64,000 bases of DNA, from the sequence record OP617745.1. The stretch is one strand, 5' to 3'. Position numbers and translations under genes: made by a program. Every line of letters starts with the position of its first letter. Position 1 is the first letter of the stretch. Under the pieces are notes generated by a model that saw only the letters and a list, made by a program, of their open reading frames with translations, made no database searches and was not told the DNA's origin. Positions 30,877 to 37,681 of this stretch are shown here, piece by piece.

Positions 30877-31752
30877 ATGATTAACGTTATTAAACGTGAT
30901 GGATCAAAAGAACCACTTGACCTTGATAAAATTCACCAGATTTTATTTTTTGCATGTGAAGGTATTTCTGGTGTGTCTGTGTCTGAAATTGAAATTCGTG
31001 CTAAATTGCAATTTCATGAAGGAATTAAAACTTCTGTAATTCATGATATCCTGATTAAAAGTTCATCAGAGCTTATTTCTGAAGATACTCCAAATTATCA
31101 ATACGTAGCGGGTCGTCTTTTGAATTATAGTATTCGTAAAGAAGTTTATGGTCAGTATGAACCAATTCCTTACGGAGAATATGTAAATAACATGGTTCAA
31201 AAAGGTATATACGATCCTATCATTCTGGAAAAATATAATTCAGCAGAAATCGAAGAACTTGGGAAATACATTAAACACAAGCGTGATGATAAATTTACTT
31301 TTGTTGCGATGAGTCAATGGCAAGGTAAGTATCTGTGTAAAAACCGTGTAACTAAAGAAATTTATGAAACACCACAAATGGCTTATATGACTATCGCTGC
31401 TACGATTTTCTCTGAATATAGTACTGAAATTCGTTTGTCATATGTTAAGAAGTTCTATGATGCTATTAGTACTTTTGATATTAGTTTACCAACTCCGATT
31501 ATGTCCGGTCTTCGCACTAATACACGTCAGTTCTCAAGTTGTGTAGTACTGAATGTTGGCGATAGTCTTGATAGTATTGGTTCCAGTAATCATGCAATCT
31601 TGCGTTATATTTCACGTAAAGCAGGGCTTGGTGTTAATATGGGACGTATTCGTGCAATTGATTCTGCAATTCGTGATGGTGATGCAGTACATACTGGTGT
31701 AGTACCATTCTTATCTGCATTAGCAAAAACAGTTAAAAGCTGTTCACAGGGT
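30877..31752 (+). CDS. nrdA: Ribonucleotide reductase class Ia alpha subunit, exon 1 (ATP cone to SCSQG)
   Basis: VIKRDG ATP cone, PTPIMSG, FSSCV, GLGV and KSCSQG motifs; followed directly by an in-frame TAA that is the start of the intron. Confidence 0.95.
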
Positions 31753-32416
31753 TAATAACATAGCCGTCCATATTAGTAATAATATGGAGTATGATCTCTT
31801 TAATTGCTGGGAAATCCTAAAGCCTAAATATAACTTTAATGAAGTGATGAACAAGTTTAGGATGATACAATGGATAATCAGCAGGTAAGTTTTATGAATC
31901 TCTTATCTATACCAAAACATACAGAATATTATACTGATGGTAATGGAAATATCATCAGTACTAAAAGAAATAAAATAAAAACTTTGACTCCGCATTTACA
32001 TTATGGAAGAAGTAAAAATCCATATATGAGAGTAAAAGTTTCAGGGAAACTATATTTGGTGCATAGATTGGTAGCATCAATATTAGTTGGAAGAGAATTA
32101 TATGAAAATGAATATGTAAATCATATTGATGGAAATACGCAAAATAATTCATTATCTAACTTAGAAATAGTAACTCATATTGAAAATGTTCAACACGCCG
32201 TGGAAAATAAATTATATTGCCAAGGCAACGAATGGTATAAAGCACGAAATTTATAAAAAAACTTCAACGACTAGCTCATAGGAGCGTAGCATCAAGTGAT
32301 GCGAAATGGGAGACACCCTACAAATGAGGGTGAAGATATAGTCTAGACTGTATAGAAATATACAGAAGTTCATAAGAGAACTGGTGGTATCTAACGAATA
32401 CCATTGAATATAGTCG
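31753..32416 (+). mobile_element. Group I intron (IA2-like) in nrdA, 664 nt
   Basis: 5' splice site after U and a terminal G. P AATTGCTGGGAA (31802), Q AATCAGCAG (31876), R TTCAACGACTA (32263), S AAGATATAGTCT (32333). P2 with a GTAA loop, P7.1/P7.2, P8 and P9 with a GAAA loop. Splicing gives SCSQG/GVRGGAAT. Confidence 0.93.
31894..32256 (+). CDS. Intron-encoded HNH homing endonuclease
   Basis: VHRLVA...VNHIDGNTQNNSLSNLEIVTHIENVQHA. It lies between the Q and R elements (P6 loop). The start is 31870 or 31894. Confidence 0.85.
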   Translation: MNLLSIPKHTEYYTDGNGNIISTKRNKIKTLTPHLHYGRSKNPYMRVKVSGKLYLVHRLVASILVGRELYENEYVNHIDGNTQNNSLSNLEIVTHIENVQHAVENKLYCQGNEWYKARNL

Positions 32417-33163
32417 GGTGTAAGAGGCGGTGCAGCAACCGCGTATTTCCCAATGTGGCATTTGGAATTTGAAAATATTGTAGTACTGAAAAATAATAAA
32501 GGAACTGAATTTAACCGAGTAAGACAACTGGACTATTGCTTCCAAATCAATAAGACATTATATCAACGATTGATTGATGGAAAAGACATTACATTCTTTA
32601 GCCCACATGATGTTCCTGATCTATATGATGCATTTTGTGCTAATCAAGAAGAATTTGAACGTCTGTATATTAAGTATGAACTCGATGAAACTATTCGTAG
32701 GAAAACTATGCCAGCGATTGAAGCATTTAGTCATCTAATACAAGAGCGTGCAGAAACTGGCCGCATTTATATTCAGAATATTGATAATGCCAATGAGCAT
32801 GGTTCATTTATTCCAGAAATTGCACCAATTGAGCAAAGTAATCTTTGTTGTGTAACTGGTGAAACATTGGTTACTGTATTACTTGATAATAATCAAATGC
32901 AATTACCGATTATTGAAATATTGGATTTGATTGAATCTGGTAAAAATATAAAAGCAATGTCATACAACACAGAAACTGATACATACTCATTTGAAAAAAT
33001 CACGAATGCAATTAAAACAAAATCAGTAACTGAATATTATGAAATTGAAGATGAAAAAGGTAATATTCTTCGTTGTACTGAAGATCATTTGATTTATACA
33101 AAAAATCGTGGATATGTACGTGCTGACGAATTACAAGAAGATGATGAAATAATTTCATTGTAA
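32417..33163 (+). CDS. nrdA: nrdA exon 2 plus the N-half of split intein 1 (end of polypeptide 1)
   Basis: GVRGGAAT, PMWHLE, GRIYIQN and QSNLC, then the intein N-half and a stop codon. Confidence 0.93.
   Translation, partial: GVRGGAATAYFPMWHLEFENIVVLKNNKGTEFNRVRQLDYCFQINKTLYQRLIDGKDITFFSPHDVPDLYDAFCANQEEFERLYIKYELDETIRRKTMPAIEAFSHLIQERAETGRIYIQNIDNANEHGSFIPEIAPIEQSNLCCVTGETLVTVLLDNNQMQLPIIEILDLIESGKNIKAMSYNTETDTYSFEKITNAIKTKSVTEYYEIEDEKGNILRCTEDHLIYTKNRGYVRADELQEDDEIISL
32849..33160 (+). mobile_element. Split intein 1, N-half (104 aa)
   Basis: Block A CVTGETLV and block B LRCTEDHLIYT, then GYVRADELQEDD and a stop; no C-terminal HN in this frame. Confidence 0.9.
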
Positions 33164-33168
33164 TCATA

Positions 33169-33209
33169 GGTAGTGTGATTTCTAATAAATAACATGAAAT
33201 CACACTACC
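33169..33209 (+). promoter_or_regulatory. 14-bp hairpin with TAAATA in the loop, upstream of the GIY-YIG gene
   Basis: GGTAGTGTGATTTC-TAATAAATAACAT-GAAATCACACTACC. Confidence 0.7.
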
Positions 33210-33224
33210 ATTGAGACAACAATA

Positions 33225-33938
33225 ATGAAACAATACGAAGTATATTGTCATACTAATACATTAAACAATAAATCATATATTGGTTATACATCACAGAGTA
33301 CGTTGACGCGTCTACAAAAGCATATTTTAAATGCTAATTATGGCATACAAAGTCATTTTTACCGTGCAATAAGAAAATATGGCATTGAAGTATTCAGTAC
33401 TAAAATATTGTTTAAAACAGATATTTTAGAAGAAGCACTTGAAATGGAAAAATATTATATTAAAGAATATGATTCTATTGTAAATGGATATAATATGACT
33501 TCTGGTGGAACTGGTGGAAATACCCAAATAGGTTTTGATGATGAAAAAATGGAACAATATTTAAATGATTTGTCAAACAGAACTTCATCAGAAAAGAATC
33601 CAAATCATTCAGGTAAAACAGATGATGAAATTGTTGATTTTTATTATAATTTATATATGGAAAATATGAACTGGCTTAGTAGACCTTTTATGCTTAAAGC
33701 AAAAGAAAATGGAATACCACAATCATTTTCTAAATGTAGATTTAATGGTTTAGGGTGGACTGAATTACGAAAACGAATTTTGGAAAAAGTTCAAATAACT
33801 AATCCAGAAATTAAAGAAATAAAATATATTAGAACGAAAGAACATATTGAAAAATTATCAGGTACTCAATTTAAAAAAGGAATTAAGTGGAATGAGCAAC
33901 CTCAAAATAAGAAAAGTAAAGGTGGAAACACCAATTGA
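33225..33938 (+). CDS. Free-standing GIY-YIG homing endonuclease inside split intein 1
   Basis: EVYCHTN...YIGYT...RLQKH...EKYYI...GYNMTSGG. Confidence 0.9.
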   Translation: MKQYEVYCHTNTLNNKSYIGYTSQSTLTRLQKHILNANYGIQSHFYRAIRKYGIEVFSTKILFKTDILEEALEMEKYYIKEYDSIVNGYNMTSGGTGGNTQIGFDDEKMEQYLNDLSNRTSSEKNPNHSGKTDDEIVDFYYNLYMENMNWLSRPFMLKAKENGIPQSFSKCRFNGLGWTELRKRILEKVQITNPEIKEIKYIRTKEHIEKLSGTQFKKGIKWNEQPQNKKSKGGNTN

Positions 33939-34002
33939 TGTTTATGATATCACGGTAGAAAATAATCATAATTTCTTCGCAGATGAAATTTTAGTTCATA
34001 AC
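33892..34002 (+). mobile_element. Split intein 1, C-half (37 aa)
   Basis: Block F VYDITVENNHNFFA and block G ILVHN, with Cys at +1. Confidence 0.92.
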
Positions 34003-34917
34003 TGTGAGATTGACTTACCAAGTTCTCCATTTGAAGATATTAATAATGGTGATGGTCTTATTAGTCTATGTACTTTGAGTGCTATTAACTGGGGTAATTT
34101 TGACAAACCCGAAGATATGGAAGAAGCGTGTGATTTGGCCGTTCGTGCATTAGATGCTATTCTTGATTATCAGGATTATCCAGTTGTTCACGCAGAACGA
34201 GCTACAAAGCTCTATAGGCCGCTTGGTGTTGGTATCATGAGTTTGGCTTACTTCCTTGCTAAACGTGGTTTAAAATACGATACAAACGCATTGAGCACTA
34301 TTAACGAATGGTCAGAAGCGTGGTCTTATTATTTGATTAAAGCATCGGTGAATCTTGCCAAAGAAAAAGGACGCTGTGATGGATTTAATAATACCAAGTA
34401 CTCACAAGGTTTATTCCCTCATGATACTTATAAATCAGATTCATATATTAATGAAGTTGCCCCGTATGAACTAAAACAAGATTGGGATGCACTACGTGAA
34501 GAAATGGTGGAGCATGGTATTCGAAATGCAACTCTACATGCTATTATGCCAGGCGAATGCCAATCGTGGGACAATAAACTAAACACAGTAGAATATGGAA
34601 ATATTGATTTTCATGAATTATGCGAAAAATATGGAATTAATTATGAAGATGTAGAACGTAATGGTATTCCAGATTCATATAATTTAGCACAACCATTAAA
34701 GATTAATACTGCTAATGGTGAAAAAGAAGCGACTCGACTTTATTATAATGGAAACTATGAAATTTATAAATTAACTTTTGATGATGGTAATGAATATTCA
34801 TTTACTGGTAATCATCAACTAAAAGTTATTGAAGATGGTGTTGAATTCTGGTGCAGAGTTGATATGTTAACAGAAAATATGGAAGTTGTTAATATAAATG
34901 AAAAGAATAAAGGATGA
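33892..34917 (+). CDS. nrdA: nrdA polypeptide 2: IntC1 - NrdA middle (185 aa) - IntN2
   Basis: MSNLKIRK...VYDITV...LVHN/CEIDLP, SLCTLSAINWG, RPLGVG, NATLHAIMPGE/CQSWD. The ATG at 33892 follows an AAGGA/GTGGA RBS. Confidence 0.92.
   Translation: MSNLKIRKVKVETPIDVYDITVENNHNFFADEILVHNCEIDLPSSPFEDINNGDGLISLCTLSAINWGNFDKPEDMEEACDLAVRALDAILDYQDYPVVHAERATKLYRPLGVGIMSLAYFLAKRGLKYDTNALSTINEWSEAWSYYLIKASVNLAKEKGRCDGFNNTKYSQGLFPHDTYKSDSYINEVAPYELKQDWDALREEMVEHGIRNATLHAIMPGECQSWDNKLNTVEYGNIDFHELCEKYGINYEDVERNGIPDSYNLAQPLKINTANGEKEATRLYYNGNYEIYKLTFDDGNEYSFTGNHQLKVIEDGVEFWCRVDMLTENMEVVNINEKNKG
34558..34914 (+). mobile_element. Split intein 2, N-half (119 aa)
   Basis: Begins CQSWDNKL after MPGE; block B SFTGNHQLKV, then WCRVDML and a stop. 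Confidence 0.88.
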
Positions 34918-35869
34918 ATTAAAATGTAATCAATATAATAGCCAAGAATTGTACTTGGCTATATTTGAATATTATAAGAATTTAAAAAATAAGCAAAGTA
35001 AAAAATTTAGAAAATATGTAGAAGAATCTAGATTATATAATATTGAATCTATGAAAAAGTTCTTTGCACTACAGGGTCATGGTATTGCTTATAAACCGGA
35101 ATATTATATGTATCTTCATTGTGTTGATGAAAAACAAGCTAATGAATATTTGAACATAATGATGGAAAATAAAAAAACCTCTAAAGAAAATTTTATTAAA
35201 AAGCATGGCATGGAAAAAGGTACATTATTGTGGAATGAATTTAAGAATAAAACATTAAATAAAACTCCAACTCGTGGAACTATGTATTTTACGGGTAATA
35301 ACGAACTTGATAAAATGCTATCATCATTATATAGAAAGATAACAAATAAAAGGTGTATAGAATATTATTTACACAATTATGATATTTCATATGAAAAAGC
35401 ATTAGAGTTGCAATTAAATTATCAAAAAGAAAATTCTGGTGTATTTGGAGAATATTATGAACTTAGAGATTTATCACATAAACCTAAATTTGATCATACG
35501 TTTGAAGTTACACAAGAATGCATACGTAAACGCCAAATATCAAAAAATAAACTTGGGAAATGTGTACATCCTGATGATAAAAAAGAATGGGAAAAATATA
35601 GAAATAAAGTATGTTCGTTAACAAGAAAAGAAATTTATATTTCTGAATTAGAAAATTATGATTTATATATAAAAAACCCAAACGAATGGCATCTGGATCA
35701 TATTGTATCTAAAATACATGGATTTTTAAACTCGGTACCACCGGAAATAATTGCTTCTATTCATAATTTACAGATTATTCCAGCTAAAGAGAATATAGCA
35801 AAAAACTATAGAAGTAATATGGACATTAATGATTTATTAAGGATATATAATGAAAATCGTAAAAATTGA
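34898..35869 (+). CDS. Free-standing HNH homing endonuclease inside split intein 2
   Basis: C-terminal HLDHIVS...HNLQIIPAKENIAKN; overlaps both flanking nrdA pieces by 20 nt. Confidence 0.8.
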   Translation: MKRIKDELKCNQYNSQELYLAIFEYYKNLKNKQSKKFRKYVEESRLYNIESMKKFFALQGHGIAYKPEYYMYLHCVDEKQANEYLNIMMENKKTSKENFIKKHGMEKGTLLWNEFKNKTLNKTPTRGTMYFTGNNELDKMLSSLYRKITNKRCIEYYLHNYDISYEKALELQLNYQKENSGVFGEYYELRDLSHKPKFDHTFEVTQECIRKRQISKNKLGKCVHPDDKKEWEKYRNKVCSLTRKEIYISELENYDLYIKNPNEWHLDHIVSKIHGFLNSVPPEIIASIHNLQIIPAKENIAKNYRSNMDINDLLRIYNENRKN

Positions 35870-35954
35870 AAAAAATGGAATAAAACCAACTTGGGATATT
35901 GAAGTCCCTGATGGAAATGAATATGTTCTTCCAAATGGTATTGTATCTCATAAT
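35850..35954 (+). mobile_element. Split intein 2, C-half (35 aa)
   Basis: Block F TWDIEVP and block G IVSHN, with Thr at +1. Confidence 0.92.
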
Positions 35955-36407
35955 ACATCATCACAAATTAGTAATAGTACTGCTGGTATTGAAAAGATTC
36001 GTTCTCTTGTAACAGTAAAAACTTCTAAAGATGGTGTTCTTAAACAAGTTGTACCTGAAATTTCAAAATTAAAGAACAAATATGACCTACTATGGGAACA
36101 ATCTGATAATATTGGTTATCTTCAGGTGTGTGGTGTTATGCAGAAATATATGGATCAAGGTATAAGTACTAATACGAGTTATAATCCTGAAAAGTTCCAA
36201 GATGGAAAAGTGCCAATGTCAGTACTGTTAACAGAACTCCTAATGGCTTATAAACTTAACGCGAAACAACTTTATTATCATAACGTGTTGGATAATGCTT
36301 CTGAAGTTGATATTGACAAATATATGGAAGAAAAAAATAAATTAACAAAAAATGATATTGTTTTGCCTGAGCTACCAGAAGATGATTGTGAGAGTTGTAA
36401 ATTGTAA
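35850..36407 (+). CDS. nrdA: nrdA polypeptide 3: IntC2 - NrdA C-terminus (150 aa)
   Basis: MKIVKIEK...TWDIEV...IVSHN/TSSQISNST, DQGISTN, LYY and the terminal CESCKL. Confidence 0.93.
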   Translation: MKIVKIEKNGIKPTWDIEVPDGNEYVLPNGIVSHNTSSQISNSTAGIEKIRSLVTVKTSKDGVLKQVVPEISKLKNKYDLLWEQSDNIGYLQVCGVMQKYMDQGISTNTSYNPEKFQDGKVPMSVLLTELLMAYKLNAKQLYYHNVLDNASEVDIDKYMEEKNKLTKNDIVLPELPEDDCESCKL

Positions 36408-36503: not shown

Positions 36504-36529
36504 AAATCCCACAATTACGTGGGATTTTT
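36504..36529 (+). terminator. Intrinsic terminator
   Basis: AAATCCCAC-AATTAC-GTGGGATTTTT. Confidence 0.7.
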
Positions 36530-36556: not shown

Positions 36557-37681
36557 ATGTCAGTGTTTCAAAAAAATACAAAATCACATTTAGAAAAGAA
36601 TATGTTTTTTGATGAAGCGGTAGATATCCAACGCTTTGAAACTAATAAGTATTCTACCATTGAGAAATTAACCGAACAACAAAAAGGATTTTTCTGGAGT
36701 CCAGGTGAAGTTGATGTAAATAAAGACAAAATTGATTTTGCTAAATTATCCGAAGCGGAAAAGCATATTTTCACTTCCAACCTCAAACGTCAGATACTAC
36801 TTGATTCAGTACAGGGTCGTGGTCCAAACACAGTACTTCTACCACTGGCTTCGTTACCAGAAGTAGAAAATTTTATTGAAACTTGGGCGTTCTTTGAAGG
36901 TGCAATTCATAGTAAATCATATACTCATATTATTCGTAACATCTACACCAATCCATCTGAAGTGTTTGATACTATGCTTGATATTCCTGAAATTCTGGAT
37001 TGTGCCGTTGACGTATCTAAGTACTATGATGATTTAGAAGAATACGGTACTTGGTATCGTATGCTTGGTGTTGGTACACATACAATCAATGGCAAAGAAC
37101 TTGTTATTGACATGTATGAACTAAAAAAGAAACTATGGTTGTGCTTAAATTCCATTAACGTATTGGAGGGTATACGATTTTATGTCTCATTCTCTGCATC
37201 CTTTGCATTTGGTGAAAATAAAATCATGGAAGGTAGTGCCAAGATCATTAGACTAATTGCGAGGGATGAGTCTCTCCATTTAGCAGCAACTCAAATGATT
37301 CTTCGTTTGTTGAAAAAAGAAGATCCAGACTTTGTTAAAATTTCTGAAGAATGCTATGATGAAGTCCAGAGTATGTTCCTGGATGCTATTAAGCAAGAAG
37401 AAGACTGGGCTGATTATCTATTTAAAGATGGTTCTATTATCGGTCTTAATGCTGAAATACTAAAACAGTATGTTCGCTGGATTGGATCTAAACGTATGGC
37501 CGCAGTTGGAATTAAGTGTCCATATGCTGTAACAAAAAATAGCCCACTCCCATGGATGGAACATTGGATTAGTAGTGCGGGTGTGCAGGTTGCACCACAA
37601 GAAACTGAAATTAGTTCTTATGTAATTGGTGGAATTAAAGCAGATATTACAGAAAACACGTTCAGTTCATTTAAACTATAA
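36557..37681 (+). CDS. nrdB: Ribonucleotide reductase class Ia beta subunit
   Basis: FWSPGEV, LDSVQGR, IHSKSY, LEGIRFYVSF and RDESLH motifs and a PQETEISSY tail; uninterrupted. Confidence 0.96.
   Translation: MSVFQKNTKSHLEKNMFFDEAVDIQRFETNKYSTIEKLTEQQKGFFWSPGEVDVNKDKIDFAKLSEAEKHIFTSNLKRQILLDSVQGRGPNTVLLPLASLPEVENFIETWAFFEGAIHSKSYTHIIRNIYTNPSEVFDTMLDIPEILDCAVDVSKYYDDLEEYGTWYRMLGVGTHTINGKELVIDMYELKKKLWLCLNSINVLEGIRFYVSFSASFAFGENKIMEGSAKIIRLIARDESLHLAATQMILRLLKKEDPDFVKISEECYDEVQSMFLDAIKQEEDWADYLFKDGSIIGLNAEILKQYVRWIGSKRMAAVGIKCPYAVTKNSPLPWMEHWISSAGVQVAPQETEISSYVIGGIKADITENTFSSFKL

Follow-up and report, generated by a model that had tools for sequence, protein, structure and literature searches.

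A three-piece nrdA gene with one group I intron and two split inteins in Klebsiella phage KP13-7, probably expressed through RNA splicing and protein trans-splicing

Self-splicing elements are known to gather in ribonucleotide reductase genes, and that of Trichodesmium erythraeum holds four inteins together with several introns. In Bacillus phage SPbeta, the reductase gene bnrdE is reported to combine an intron with an intein (Lazarevic et al. 1998), and the nrdA gene of Aeromonas phage Aeh1 is reported to be split by mobE (Friedrich et al. 2007; Crona et al. 2010, PMC3045599). From short assemblies, Dassa et al. (2009, PMC2677866) reported 26 loci with a single fracture each, in which a split intein is combined with a free-standing endonuclease gene. 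These loci include metagenomic gp41, IMPDH, NrdA-1 to NrdA-7 and NrdJ-1/2, and a non-coding spacer of 27-51 nucleotides (nt), often with a hairpin, stands before the endonuclease gene; the insertion point of NrdJ-1 lies directly after the thiyl-radical Cys. Among Campylobacter phages, two inteins were noted in nrdA of vB_CcoM-IBB_35 (Carvalho et al. 2012), and nrdA of CPt10 was read as a degenerating pseudogene (Dwivedi et al. 2013, PMC3653736). Tandem trans-splicing with two orthogonal split inteins has been engineered (e.g. PMC12707363), and in the literature searched it was found as an engineered method only. Here we analyze the nrdA region (positions 30877-36407) of a 64,000-nt window, that is, of the whole stretch of DNA studied, taken from Klebsiella phage KP13-7 (OP617745.1, 357,701 base pairs [bp]), a RaK2-like jumbo phage of the genus Alcyoneusvirus. 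The region is labeled nrdA_1, five hypothetical proteins, and nrdA_2 in GenBank. We found that it holds one nrdA gene divided by a group I intron and two split inteins.

A search of the phage collection showed that nrdA is uninterrupted (2316 nt) in RaK2, K64-1, Muenster, RCIP0023, and OU509535, at about 96% identity; empty-site alleles overall were 96-98% identical to KP13-7. The intact RaK2 gene (771 codons) was used as the reference for mapping the insertions and was compared with the nrdA region by blastn. Four collinear blocks were obtained (RaK2 coordinates 1-875, 877-1308, 1312-1863, and 1864-2316), and the gaps between them (664, 1154, and 1397 nt) add up to 3215 nt, exactly the difference between the 5531 nt of the region and the 2316 nt of the RaK2 gene. 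The insertions are the intron (664 nt), split-intein cassette 1 (1154 nt, 32849-34002), and split-intein cassette 2 (1397 nt, 34558-35954); the features within them are listed in table 1. The remaining coding segments, the exteins, comprise 292, 144, 185, and 150 amino acids (aa), which sum to 771 aa, the length of RaK2 NrdA, and align with it without gaps. Throughout, the chain pieces were compared and searched one by one, and no fused or read-through protein was used. An earlier reading of the window from its letters and open reading frames (ORFs), hereafter the sequence-only reading, had already given these piece lengths, the 664-nt intron, the three chains, and the 771-aa product, and the ORF list and the RaK2 comparison agree with it; its junctions SCSQG/GVRGG, QSNLC/CEIDLP, and IMPGE/TSSQIS were recovered by direct reading. 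The layout is a discrete architecture rather than a statistical pattern.

Stops or frameshifts introduced by sequencing or assembly could falsely split contiguous inteins, and most of the pieces are annotated as hypothetical in the GenBank record, but nothing specific speaks for such an artefact. What lies between the intein halves is in each case an entire nuclease gene (0.7-1.0 kb) and not a single stop. Moreover, the independently sequenced phage phiKp_21 carries cassette 2 alone of the three insertions; its cassette is 99.9% identical to that of KP13-7 and is flanked by exons 96-98% identical to the window, and the phiKp_21 allele is intermediate between intact RaK2 and KP13-7. The middle chain was matched at 100% by a protein cluster (P0001) from Logan assemblies independent of OP617745.1, and the layout recurs in unrelated assemblies. 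The probability of an artefact is practically negligible.

The nrdA gene of KP13-7 is most probably functional, its expression depending on a single RNA splicing event and on protein trans-splicing at two sites. We favor this reading because the splicing residues are conserved, a Gln codon has become the +1 Cys, each chain has a ribosome-binding site, the exteins are under purifying selection, and the layout persists across distant hosts. In the proposed mechanism, the nrdA-nrdB region would be transcribed as one unit, and the group I intron would excise itself, joining codons 292 and 293; in unspliced RNA, translation would halt at the first codon of the intron. Translation would then yield three chains, every one with a Shine-Dalgarno site to itself: chain 1, a 436-aa extein followed by the N-terminal half of intein 1 (IntN1); chain 2, the C-terminal half of intein 1 (IntC1), 185 aa, and IntN2; and chain 3, IntC2 and 150 aa. 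IntN1 would pair with IntC1 and IntN2 with IntC2, each pair carrying out protein trans-splicing, and the product would be a 771-aa NrdA joined at NLC-CEI and PGE-TSS. During co-infection, the three nuclease genes would carry their elements into empty alleles of nrdA, dragging flanking exon sequence with them. Because the middle chain starts with an IntC and finishes with an IntN, cross-reaction of the inteins would cyclize or mis-join it. We also lean toward natural tandem trans-splicing, in which two unrelated, non-cross-reacting split inteins would join a three-piece enzyme in one cell, and which would recur in distant phages (jumbo phages of Klebsiella, myoviruses of Campylobacter, and many phages without a cultured representative).

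Both intein assignments of the sequence-only reading gained support from homology. Intein 1 is a homologue of the NrdJ-1 split intein: residues 12-102 of IntN1 matched the solved NrdJ-1 structure (PDB 8ubs) at E 1.1e-17, and IntN1 scored 38.2 bits with Pfam Intein_splicing (cut-off 35.8). Its junctions read QSNLC/CVTGETLV and ILVHN/CEIDLP, with class 1 residues (C1, TEDH, terminal HN, and +1 Cys). The insertion lies directly C-terminal to the thiyl-radical Cys (NLC/C), between the equivalents of Cys439 and Glu441, and all three bases of the codon that encodes Gln in RaK2 are changed to give the +1 Cys. Members of this family use two insertion registers that differ by a single residue. In the register NL/C..HN/CxE, found in the metagenomic contigs L004 and L005 (n = 71 of the chains retrieved), the catalytic thiyl Cys itself is the +1 Cys; in the register NLC/C..HN/CE, found in KP13-7 and in Campylobacter phage vB_CjeM_WX1 (n = 41), the two are different residues. 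For KP13-7, an insertion before the thiyl Cys (intein beginning CCVTGE) was considered and rejected; the result would be N-L-C-E, with residue 440 missing, and a protein of 770 aa, and the intein N-terminus of the relatives aligns from the second Cys.

Within cassette 1, IntC1 likely starts at ATG 33892, although GTG 33886 and TTG 33847 are also present in frame, and the start pattern M-x-LKI is common to the homologues. The gene between the halves was correctly recognized by the sequence-only reading as a GIY-YIG endonuclease (Pfam 30.6 bits, cut-off 22.6; PHROG homing endonuclease, 3.3e-25). Chain 2 starts within its 3' end, and homologues occupy the same slot in L004 and L005. The 14-bp hairpin before this gene, which had been overlooked, resembles the hairpins of Dassa et al.; Rfam matches to mir-23 and mir-71 (33152-33225, both strands) correspond to this spacer hairpin and are spurious, not microRNAs. 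A nucleotide search of the phage collection for a donor of cassette 1 matched KP13-7 itself only.

Intein 2 has the junctions IMPGE/CQSWDNKL and IVSHN/TSSQIS and likewise shows class 1 residues (C1, TGNH, terminal HN, and +1 Thr). Its site, E621/T622, corresponds to E623/T624 of Escherichia coli and lies in the conserved PxETSSQIS motif. The search of the PDB with the single IntN2 sequence gave nothing significant. A full HMMER search with IntN2 returned 204 representative clusters, and among the best 150 the match stood at the protein C-terminus, as expected of a split intein, in about 110, and was internal and followed by SHN/[TS], as in a contiguous intein, in about 27. Contiguous homologues at the same site include P0002, P0017, and the annotated intein of Campylobacter phage CP220 nrdA. 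A profile built from nine contiguous members matched solved inteins, including Pho RadA (the best, E 1.1e-8), Spl DnaX, VidaL, DnaB, Mxe GyrA, and Npu/Ssp DnaE; besides Pho RadA, about 25 inteins were matched below 1e-3. The assignment of intein 2 is based on these relatives, and the family is a mostly split one whose contiguous members match solved inteins. Searching the phage collection with the nucleotide sequence of cassette 2 identified phiKp_21 as the only match.

Across homologues of both inteins that are 41-54% identical, Cys1, TxxH, the terminal HN, and the +1 Cys or Thr are invariant. IntN1 and IntN2 share 25% identity (E 0.02). Each IntN half is acidic, with a net charge of -11, and each IntC is rich in Lys at its N-terminus, a charge pattern which fits, and does not prove, specific pairing. 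Another possibility is that the three chains form an active reductase by non-covalent assembly, with the intein halves acting as docking domains only. A precedent is Aeh1 nrdA, which is reported to be active as two chains (PMC2677866, PMC3045599), and in some metagenomic chains an acidic leader stands first, just ahead of the C462 region, and IntC1 is absent, suggesting that intein-less splits occur in the gene family. Against this, the splicing residues stay invariant in distant homologues, and the Gln-to-Cys change at +1 is exactly what splicing needs. In addition, intein 1 is homologous to NrdJ-1, itself used as a trans-splicing tool, and unligated chains would keep about 140 aa of intein in the stretch from Cys439 to Glu441. 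We consider non-covalent assembly very unlikely.

Trans-splicing would restore a complete class Ia enzyme. The host protein has the ATP-cone and barrel domains of NrdA (Pfam), its catalytic residues are complete, and nrdB is adjacent. The residues were placed through an alignment of RaK2 NrdA with E. coli R1 (E 8.7e-276), and they are spread over three chains just as had been claimed. Chain 1 has C222, N434, and C436 (C225, N437, and C439 in E. coli), chain 2 has E438 and C459 (E441 and C462), and chain 3 has the Tyr-Tyr pair (Y730/Y731 equivalents) and the C-terminal CESC. A Shine-Dalgarno site precedes each chain: AAGGA lies 8 nt upstream of the ATG of chain 1, at 33877-81 inside the GIY-YIG gene for chain 2, and 7 nt upstream of ATG 35850, inside the second nuclease-like gene, for chain 3. 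Purifying selection was detected in every extein, with ratios of nonsynonymous to synonymous substitution rates (dN/dS) of 0.02-0.25.

The sequence-only reading called nrdA essential, which was an overstatement: T4 nrd mutants are viable with the host reductase present, and nrd genes are dispensable in that phage. The locus might be a decaying pseudogene full of selfish elements in a phage that relies on host reductases, and the CPt10 nrdA has been called a degenerating pseudogene (PMC3653736). Decay is, however, hard to reconcile with intact frames, a complete set of catalytic residues, the low dN/dS of the exteins, a ribosome-binding site for every chain, and an intact nrdB. The same architecture is also kept in L004, L005, and WX1, the exteins of which are only 31-61% identical to RaK2 NrdA. 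A pseudogene is therefore unlikely.

The layout was sought in related phages and in metagenomes, and the double fracture was indeed found in WX1, L004, and L005. Searching with chain 2 returned 1055 proteins. At least 27 of the best 120 clusters have the IntC1...IntN2 architecture (41-54% identity), another 46 have IntC1 with an empty site 2, and a few have IntC1 with a contiguous intein 2. The contigs L004 (79.6 kb) and L005 (151.7 kb) contain, in order, the N-chain, the GIY-YIG gene, the middle chain, an ORF like the second nuclease-like gene of KP13-7, the C-chain, and nrdB, without the intron; L011 and L012 (311.5 kb) have the intron and split intein 2, with site 1 empty. In WX1 (L013, OP654737.1 153519-158676), both inteins are split, and the chains, which measure 534, 324, and 166 aa and meet at NLC/C...HN/CEISVP and AGN/C...SHN/SSKP, are annotated in GenBank as three separate "alpha subunit" coding sequences. 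The other Campylobacter phages present partial states: intein 1 split by other ORFs and intein 2 contiguous in CPt10 and IBB_35, split intein 2 in CP21, and a contiguous intein 2 only in CP220. From their sequences, the CPt10 (L007) and IBB_35 (L008) genes look like intact fractured genes. All three elements together were seen in KP13-7 alone among the records found. The double fracture, present in WX1 and in at least 20-27 metagenomic protein clusters, is widespread but unrecognized. As separate observations, IBB_35 has a further insert of 507 nt at about RaK2 residue 298-300, near the intron site, and nine chain clusters (P0044, P0062, P0092, P0098, P0101, P0103, P0106, P0111, and P0114) have an acidic leader before the C462 region in place of IntC1 and end in IntN2; in the latter, split intein 2 may occur together with an intein-less split like that of Aeh1.

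The 664-nt insertion is, to judge from its sequence, a group I intron of the self-splicing kind, whose excision we infer. As read, the junctions are ...TCACAGGGT/TAATAAC...TAGTCG/GGTGTAAGA; exon 1 ends in U (a synonymous A in RaK2), and the intron begins with an in-frame TAA and ends in G. The 5' splice-site U paired with G in P1, the terminal G, and the P3-P9 core helices are all present, and P7.1/7.2 and P9.x can also be located by direct complementarity. The intron matched Rfam Intron_gpI (RF00028) at E 1.3e-8, and its 3' core is similar to group I introns annotated in Twort-like and T4-like phages. Introns of the same family occur at the same codon (...CAGGGT/T[AG]A...) in L011, without an ORF (79.1 bits), and in L012, with a homologous HNH_3 ORF (42.3 bits). 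An alignment of the three introns revealed compensatory changes in P1, P2, P3, P8, P9, and P9.x. These results support the group I identity put forward in the sequence-only reading. The ORF in the P6 loop, with AGGA 8 nt upstream, had been missed; the two free-standing nuclease genes counted earlier stand, and the intron-encoded one brings the total to three.

The 323-aa gene of cassette 2 had been labeled HNH. It overlaps IntN2 and IntC2 by 20 nt each, so that the cassette has no spacer. A nuclease is suggested by weak matches to PHROG 5104 (2.1e-14) and to "endonuclease VII" (2.6e-4), and by relatives in T4-like phages that are annotated as homing, HNH, or restriction endonucleases. The HNH label can be kept only tentatively: the conserved C-terminal motif, LDH...G[FY].N..P.E.I...NL..IP..EN..K, is HNH-like, one relative gave a weak Pfam HNH match (E 0.12), and an AlphaFold2 model of low confidence (9 sequences, predicted local distance difference test score 64.6) places a beta-beta-alpha element at residues 264-307, over the motif. 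An HNH nuclease is plausible, not established. The IPA-HNH family (PMC10448857) was considered and rejected, since that family has an N-terminal HNH and an AP2 domain. Homologues lie in the same slot in L004, L005, L011, and L012, and in WX1 with the C-terminal domain only. In another protein, P0127, the N-terminal helical modules are shared, and a weak DUF559/Vsr-like domain (E 0.003) stands at the end in place of the LDH...EN motif, a hint that nuclease domains may be exchanged on a shared DNA-binding part.

Several points weigh against a functional gene assembled by splicing. RNA splicing, protein splicing, the lack of cross-reaction between the inteins, and the activity and targets of the nucleases are all inferred. 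The host has its own reductases, so that selection on the phage nrdA could be relaxed. Spliced site 1 would carry two adjacent cysteines at the radical site, where RaK2 has Cys-Gln. The intein 2 halves alone stay below the Pfam cut-off (E 0.014 and 0.005). The Rfam score of the intron, 43.3 bits, is below the gathering score of 50; the ORF in the P6 loop disturbs the alignment to the model. Finally, the nuclease assignment of the 323-aa protein is not a confident one, considering that it had no Pfam match at E up to 10, that a Foldseek comparison of its model with the PDB gave no match below E = 8, and that a profile search of the PDB with its family gave nothing.

The exteins also carry signs of how the elements may have arrived. 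In the middle extein, 63 of 555 positions are not as in RaK2, with a synonymous divergence (dS) of 0.53 and dN/dS of 0.08, against a dS of 0.05-0.09 in the other exteins. Its first tract (34003-34395, 393 nt) occurs in KP13-7 only and differs from phiKp_21 at 41 positions, and a second one (34406-34554, about 150 nt) is identical to phiKp_21 and has 21 differences from RaK2. Based on the high dS and this mosaic of KP13-7-only and phiKp_21-shared tracts, the whole segment between the inteins derives from more distant nrdA genes, as would be expected from co-conversion during homing. Either two co-conversion tracts met near position 34400, or a block of intein 1, extein, and intein 2 came whole and later gave cassette 2 to a phiKp_21-like phage. 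Similarly, 9 of the 22 differences of exons 1 and 2 from RaK2 lie within about 30 nt of the intron site, which is the footprint expected of homing.

Some further features were seen around the gene. A hairpin of 9-10 bp containing GC and followed by a T run lies between nrdA and nrdB (36504-36527); it is terminator-like on both strands and could modulate read-through into nrdB. Another terminator-like site, at 32852-32874, is inside the IntN1 coding sequence, and no transcription unit was deduced from it. Promoter-like sites were not in excess (57, against 47 +/- 9 in shuffled sequence). In phiKp_21 (L010, LC768485.1 50158-52368), nrdB is split into parts of 231 and 149 aa by a 248-aa ORF with weak zinc-finger-like matches, and neither an Rfam intron nor an intein domain was found there; nrdB is undivided in KP13-7 and RaK2.

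Table 1. Features of the nrdA-nrdB region, with positions in the window
Feature	Position	Strand	Basis
nrdA exon 1, 292 codons: ATP-cone, all-alpha domain, barrel start, C225 equivalent	30877..31752	+	blastn, Pfam, alignment
Group I intron, 664 nt	31753..32416	+	Rfam, RaK2 comparison, homologous introns, covarying helices
Intron P1	31750-54/31761-65	+	direct complementarity
Intron P2	31768-75/31780-87	+	direct complementarity
Intron P3	31795-800/32308-13	+	direct complementarity
Intron P6, loop houses the ORF	31853-58/32259-64	+	direct complementarity
Intron-encoded HNH_3 homing endonuclease ORF, 128 aa	31870..32256	+	Pfam HNH_3 6.2e-12; PHROG HNH endonuclease 8e-28
Intron P7	32269-73/32339-43	+	direct complementarity
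Intron P8	32314-19/32327-32	+	direct complementarity
Intron P9	32348-54/32359-65	+	direct complementarity
nrdA exon 2, second part of the N-extein, 144 codons ending QSNLC; N437 and C439 equivalents	32417..32848	+	
IntN1, 104 aa, Cys1, block B TEDH, and stop codon	32849..33163	+	Pfam Intein_splicing; NrdJ-1 match
Perfect 14-bp hairpin in the 61-nt spacer from IntN1 stop to GIY-YIG start	33169..33209	+	-28.5 kcal/mol with flanks
Free-standing GIY-YIG homing endonuclease gene, 237 aa	33225..33938	+	Pfam GIY-YIG; PHROG
IntC1, 37 aa, ending ILVHN	33892..34002	+	ORFs, homologue alignment
Middle extein, 185 codons; E441 and C462 equivalents; +1 Cys	34003..34557	+	
IntN2, 119 aa, Cys1, block B TGNH, and stop codon	34558..34917	+	relatives, profile searches
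Free-standing 323-aa endonuclease-like gene	34898..35869	+	PHROG, motif, homologues in same slot
IntC2, 35 aa, ending IVSHN	35850..35954	+	ORFs, relatives
C-extein, 150 codons and stop; +1 Thr, YY pair, C-terminal CESC	35955..36407	+	
nrdB (small subunit), intact	36557..37681	+	operon context

Taken together, the finding is real and the gene probably functional. Every element type is already known, and the combination of a double fracture with an intron is a newly recognized variant of the fractured gene. A literature search (natural double split inteins, jumbo-phage split inteins, KP13-7, and WX1), with incomplete journal coverage, found no description of it, nor of any natural protein that needs two different trans-splicing reactions and RNA splicing. 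The sequence-only reading had thought the arrangement unusual and possibly undescribed; no paper describing it was found, but it is not a one-off, since the double fracture is present in WX1 and in many metagenomic contigs. If the reading is right, the arrangement has so far been unrecognized or read as gene decay, and the element at site 2 would represent an intein family that is new and mostly split, coupled with uncharacterized nucleases of one family. Such genes are filed as hypothetical, as duplicated "nrdA_1/nrdA_2," or as pseudogenes, so that counts of functional phage reductases would be biased. KP13-7 is cultured and has relatives with empty or half-filled sites, which would make splicing, orthogonality, homing, and co-conversion directly testable. 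Moreover, engineered tandem trans-splicing needs pairs that do not cross-react; selection may have made one here, with hundreds of natural variants. The series RaK2, phiKp_21, and KP13-7, with its foreign middle extein, also displays homing in the course of rewriting the active-site segment of an enzyme.

Compared with the loci of Dassa et al., both cassettes of KP13-7 have the host N-part in frame with IntN and then a stop (...ISL and ...KNKG), a nuclease gene on the same strand between the halves whose 3' end overlaps the IntC start, and IntC in frame with the C-part. Cassette 1 also has the spacer with a hairpin, though of 61 nt, and GIY-YIG is one of the two nuclease types found there. IntN is acidic and IntC basic, as in NrdJ-1 and NrdA-2, and intein 1 is homologous to NrdJ-1 at the same insertion point. 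However, those loci have one fracture and are from uncultured sources, whereas KP13-7 is a cultured phage with two fractures and an intron; NrdJ-1 sits in a class II NrdJ, whereas intein 1 sits in a class Ia NrdA; and cassette 2 lacks the non-coding spacer and has a nuclease that is neither GIY-YIG nor Vsr-like.

As in Aeh1, a free-standing gene for a homing endonuclease cuts a phage class Ia nrdA near the active site, and the resulting chains are translated separately. In Aeh1 no intein is present and the chains stay unligated, whereas complete intein halves flank each break in KP13-7. Like SPbeta and Trichodesmium, KP13-7 has gathered RNA and protein self-splicing elements in one reductase gene at conserved motifs; their inteins are contiguous and splice in cis within one polypeptide, in contrast to a protein that would be joined from three. 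The Campylobacter phage genes (CP220, CPt10, vB_CcoM-IBB_35, CP21, and WX1) have homologues of both inteins at the same two sites, and WX1 has a nuclease domain resembling the 323-aa gene in slot 2. They differ from KP13-7 in that codon 292 showed no group I intron, the IBB_35 insert lying nearby, and in the ORFs of slot 1; in the literature they were taken for two-intein genes or pseudogenes rather than for trans-spliced ones. Finally, engineered tandem trans-splicing uses the same plan of three segments and two split inteins, with a middle segment that bears an N-terminal IntC and a C-terminal IntN. Unlike that design, KP13-7 appears to be its natural counterpart.

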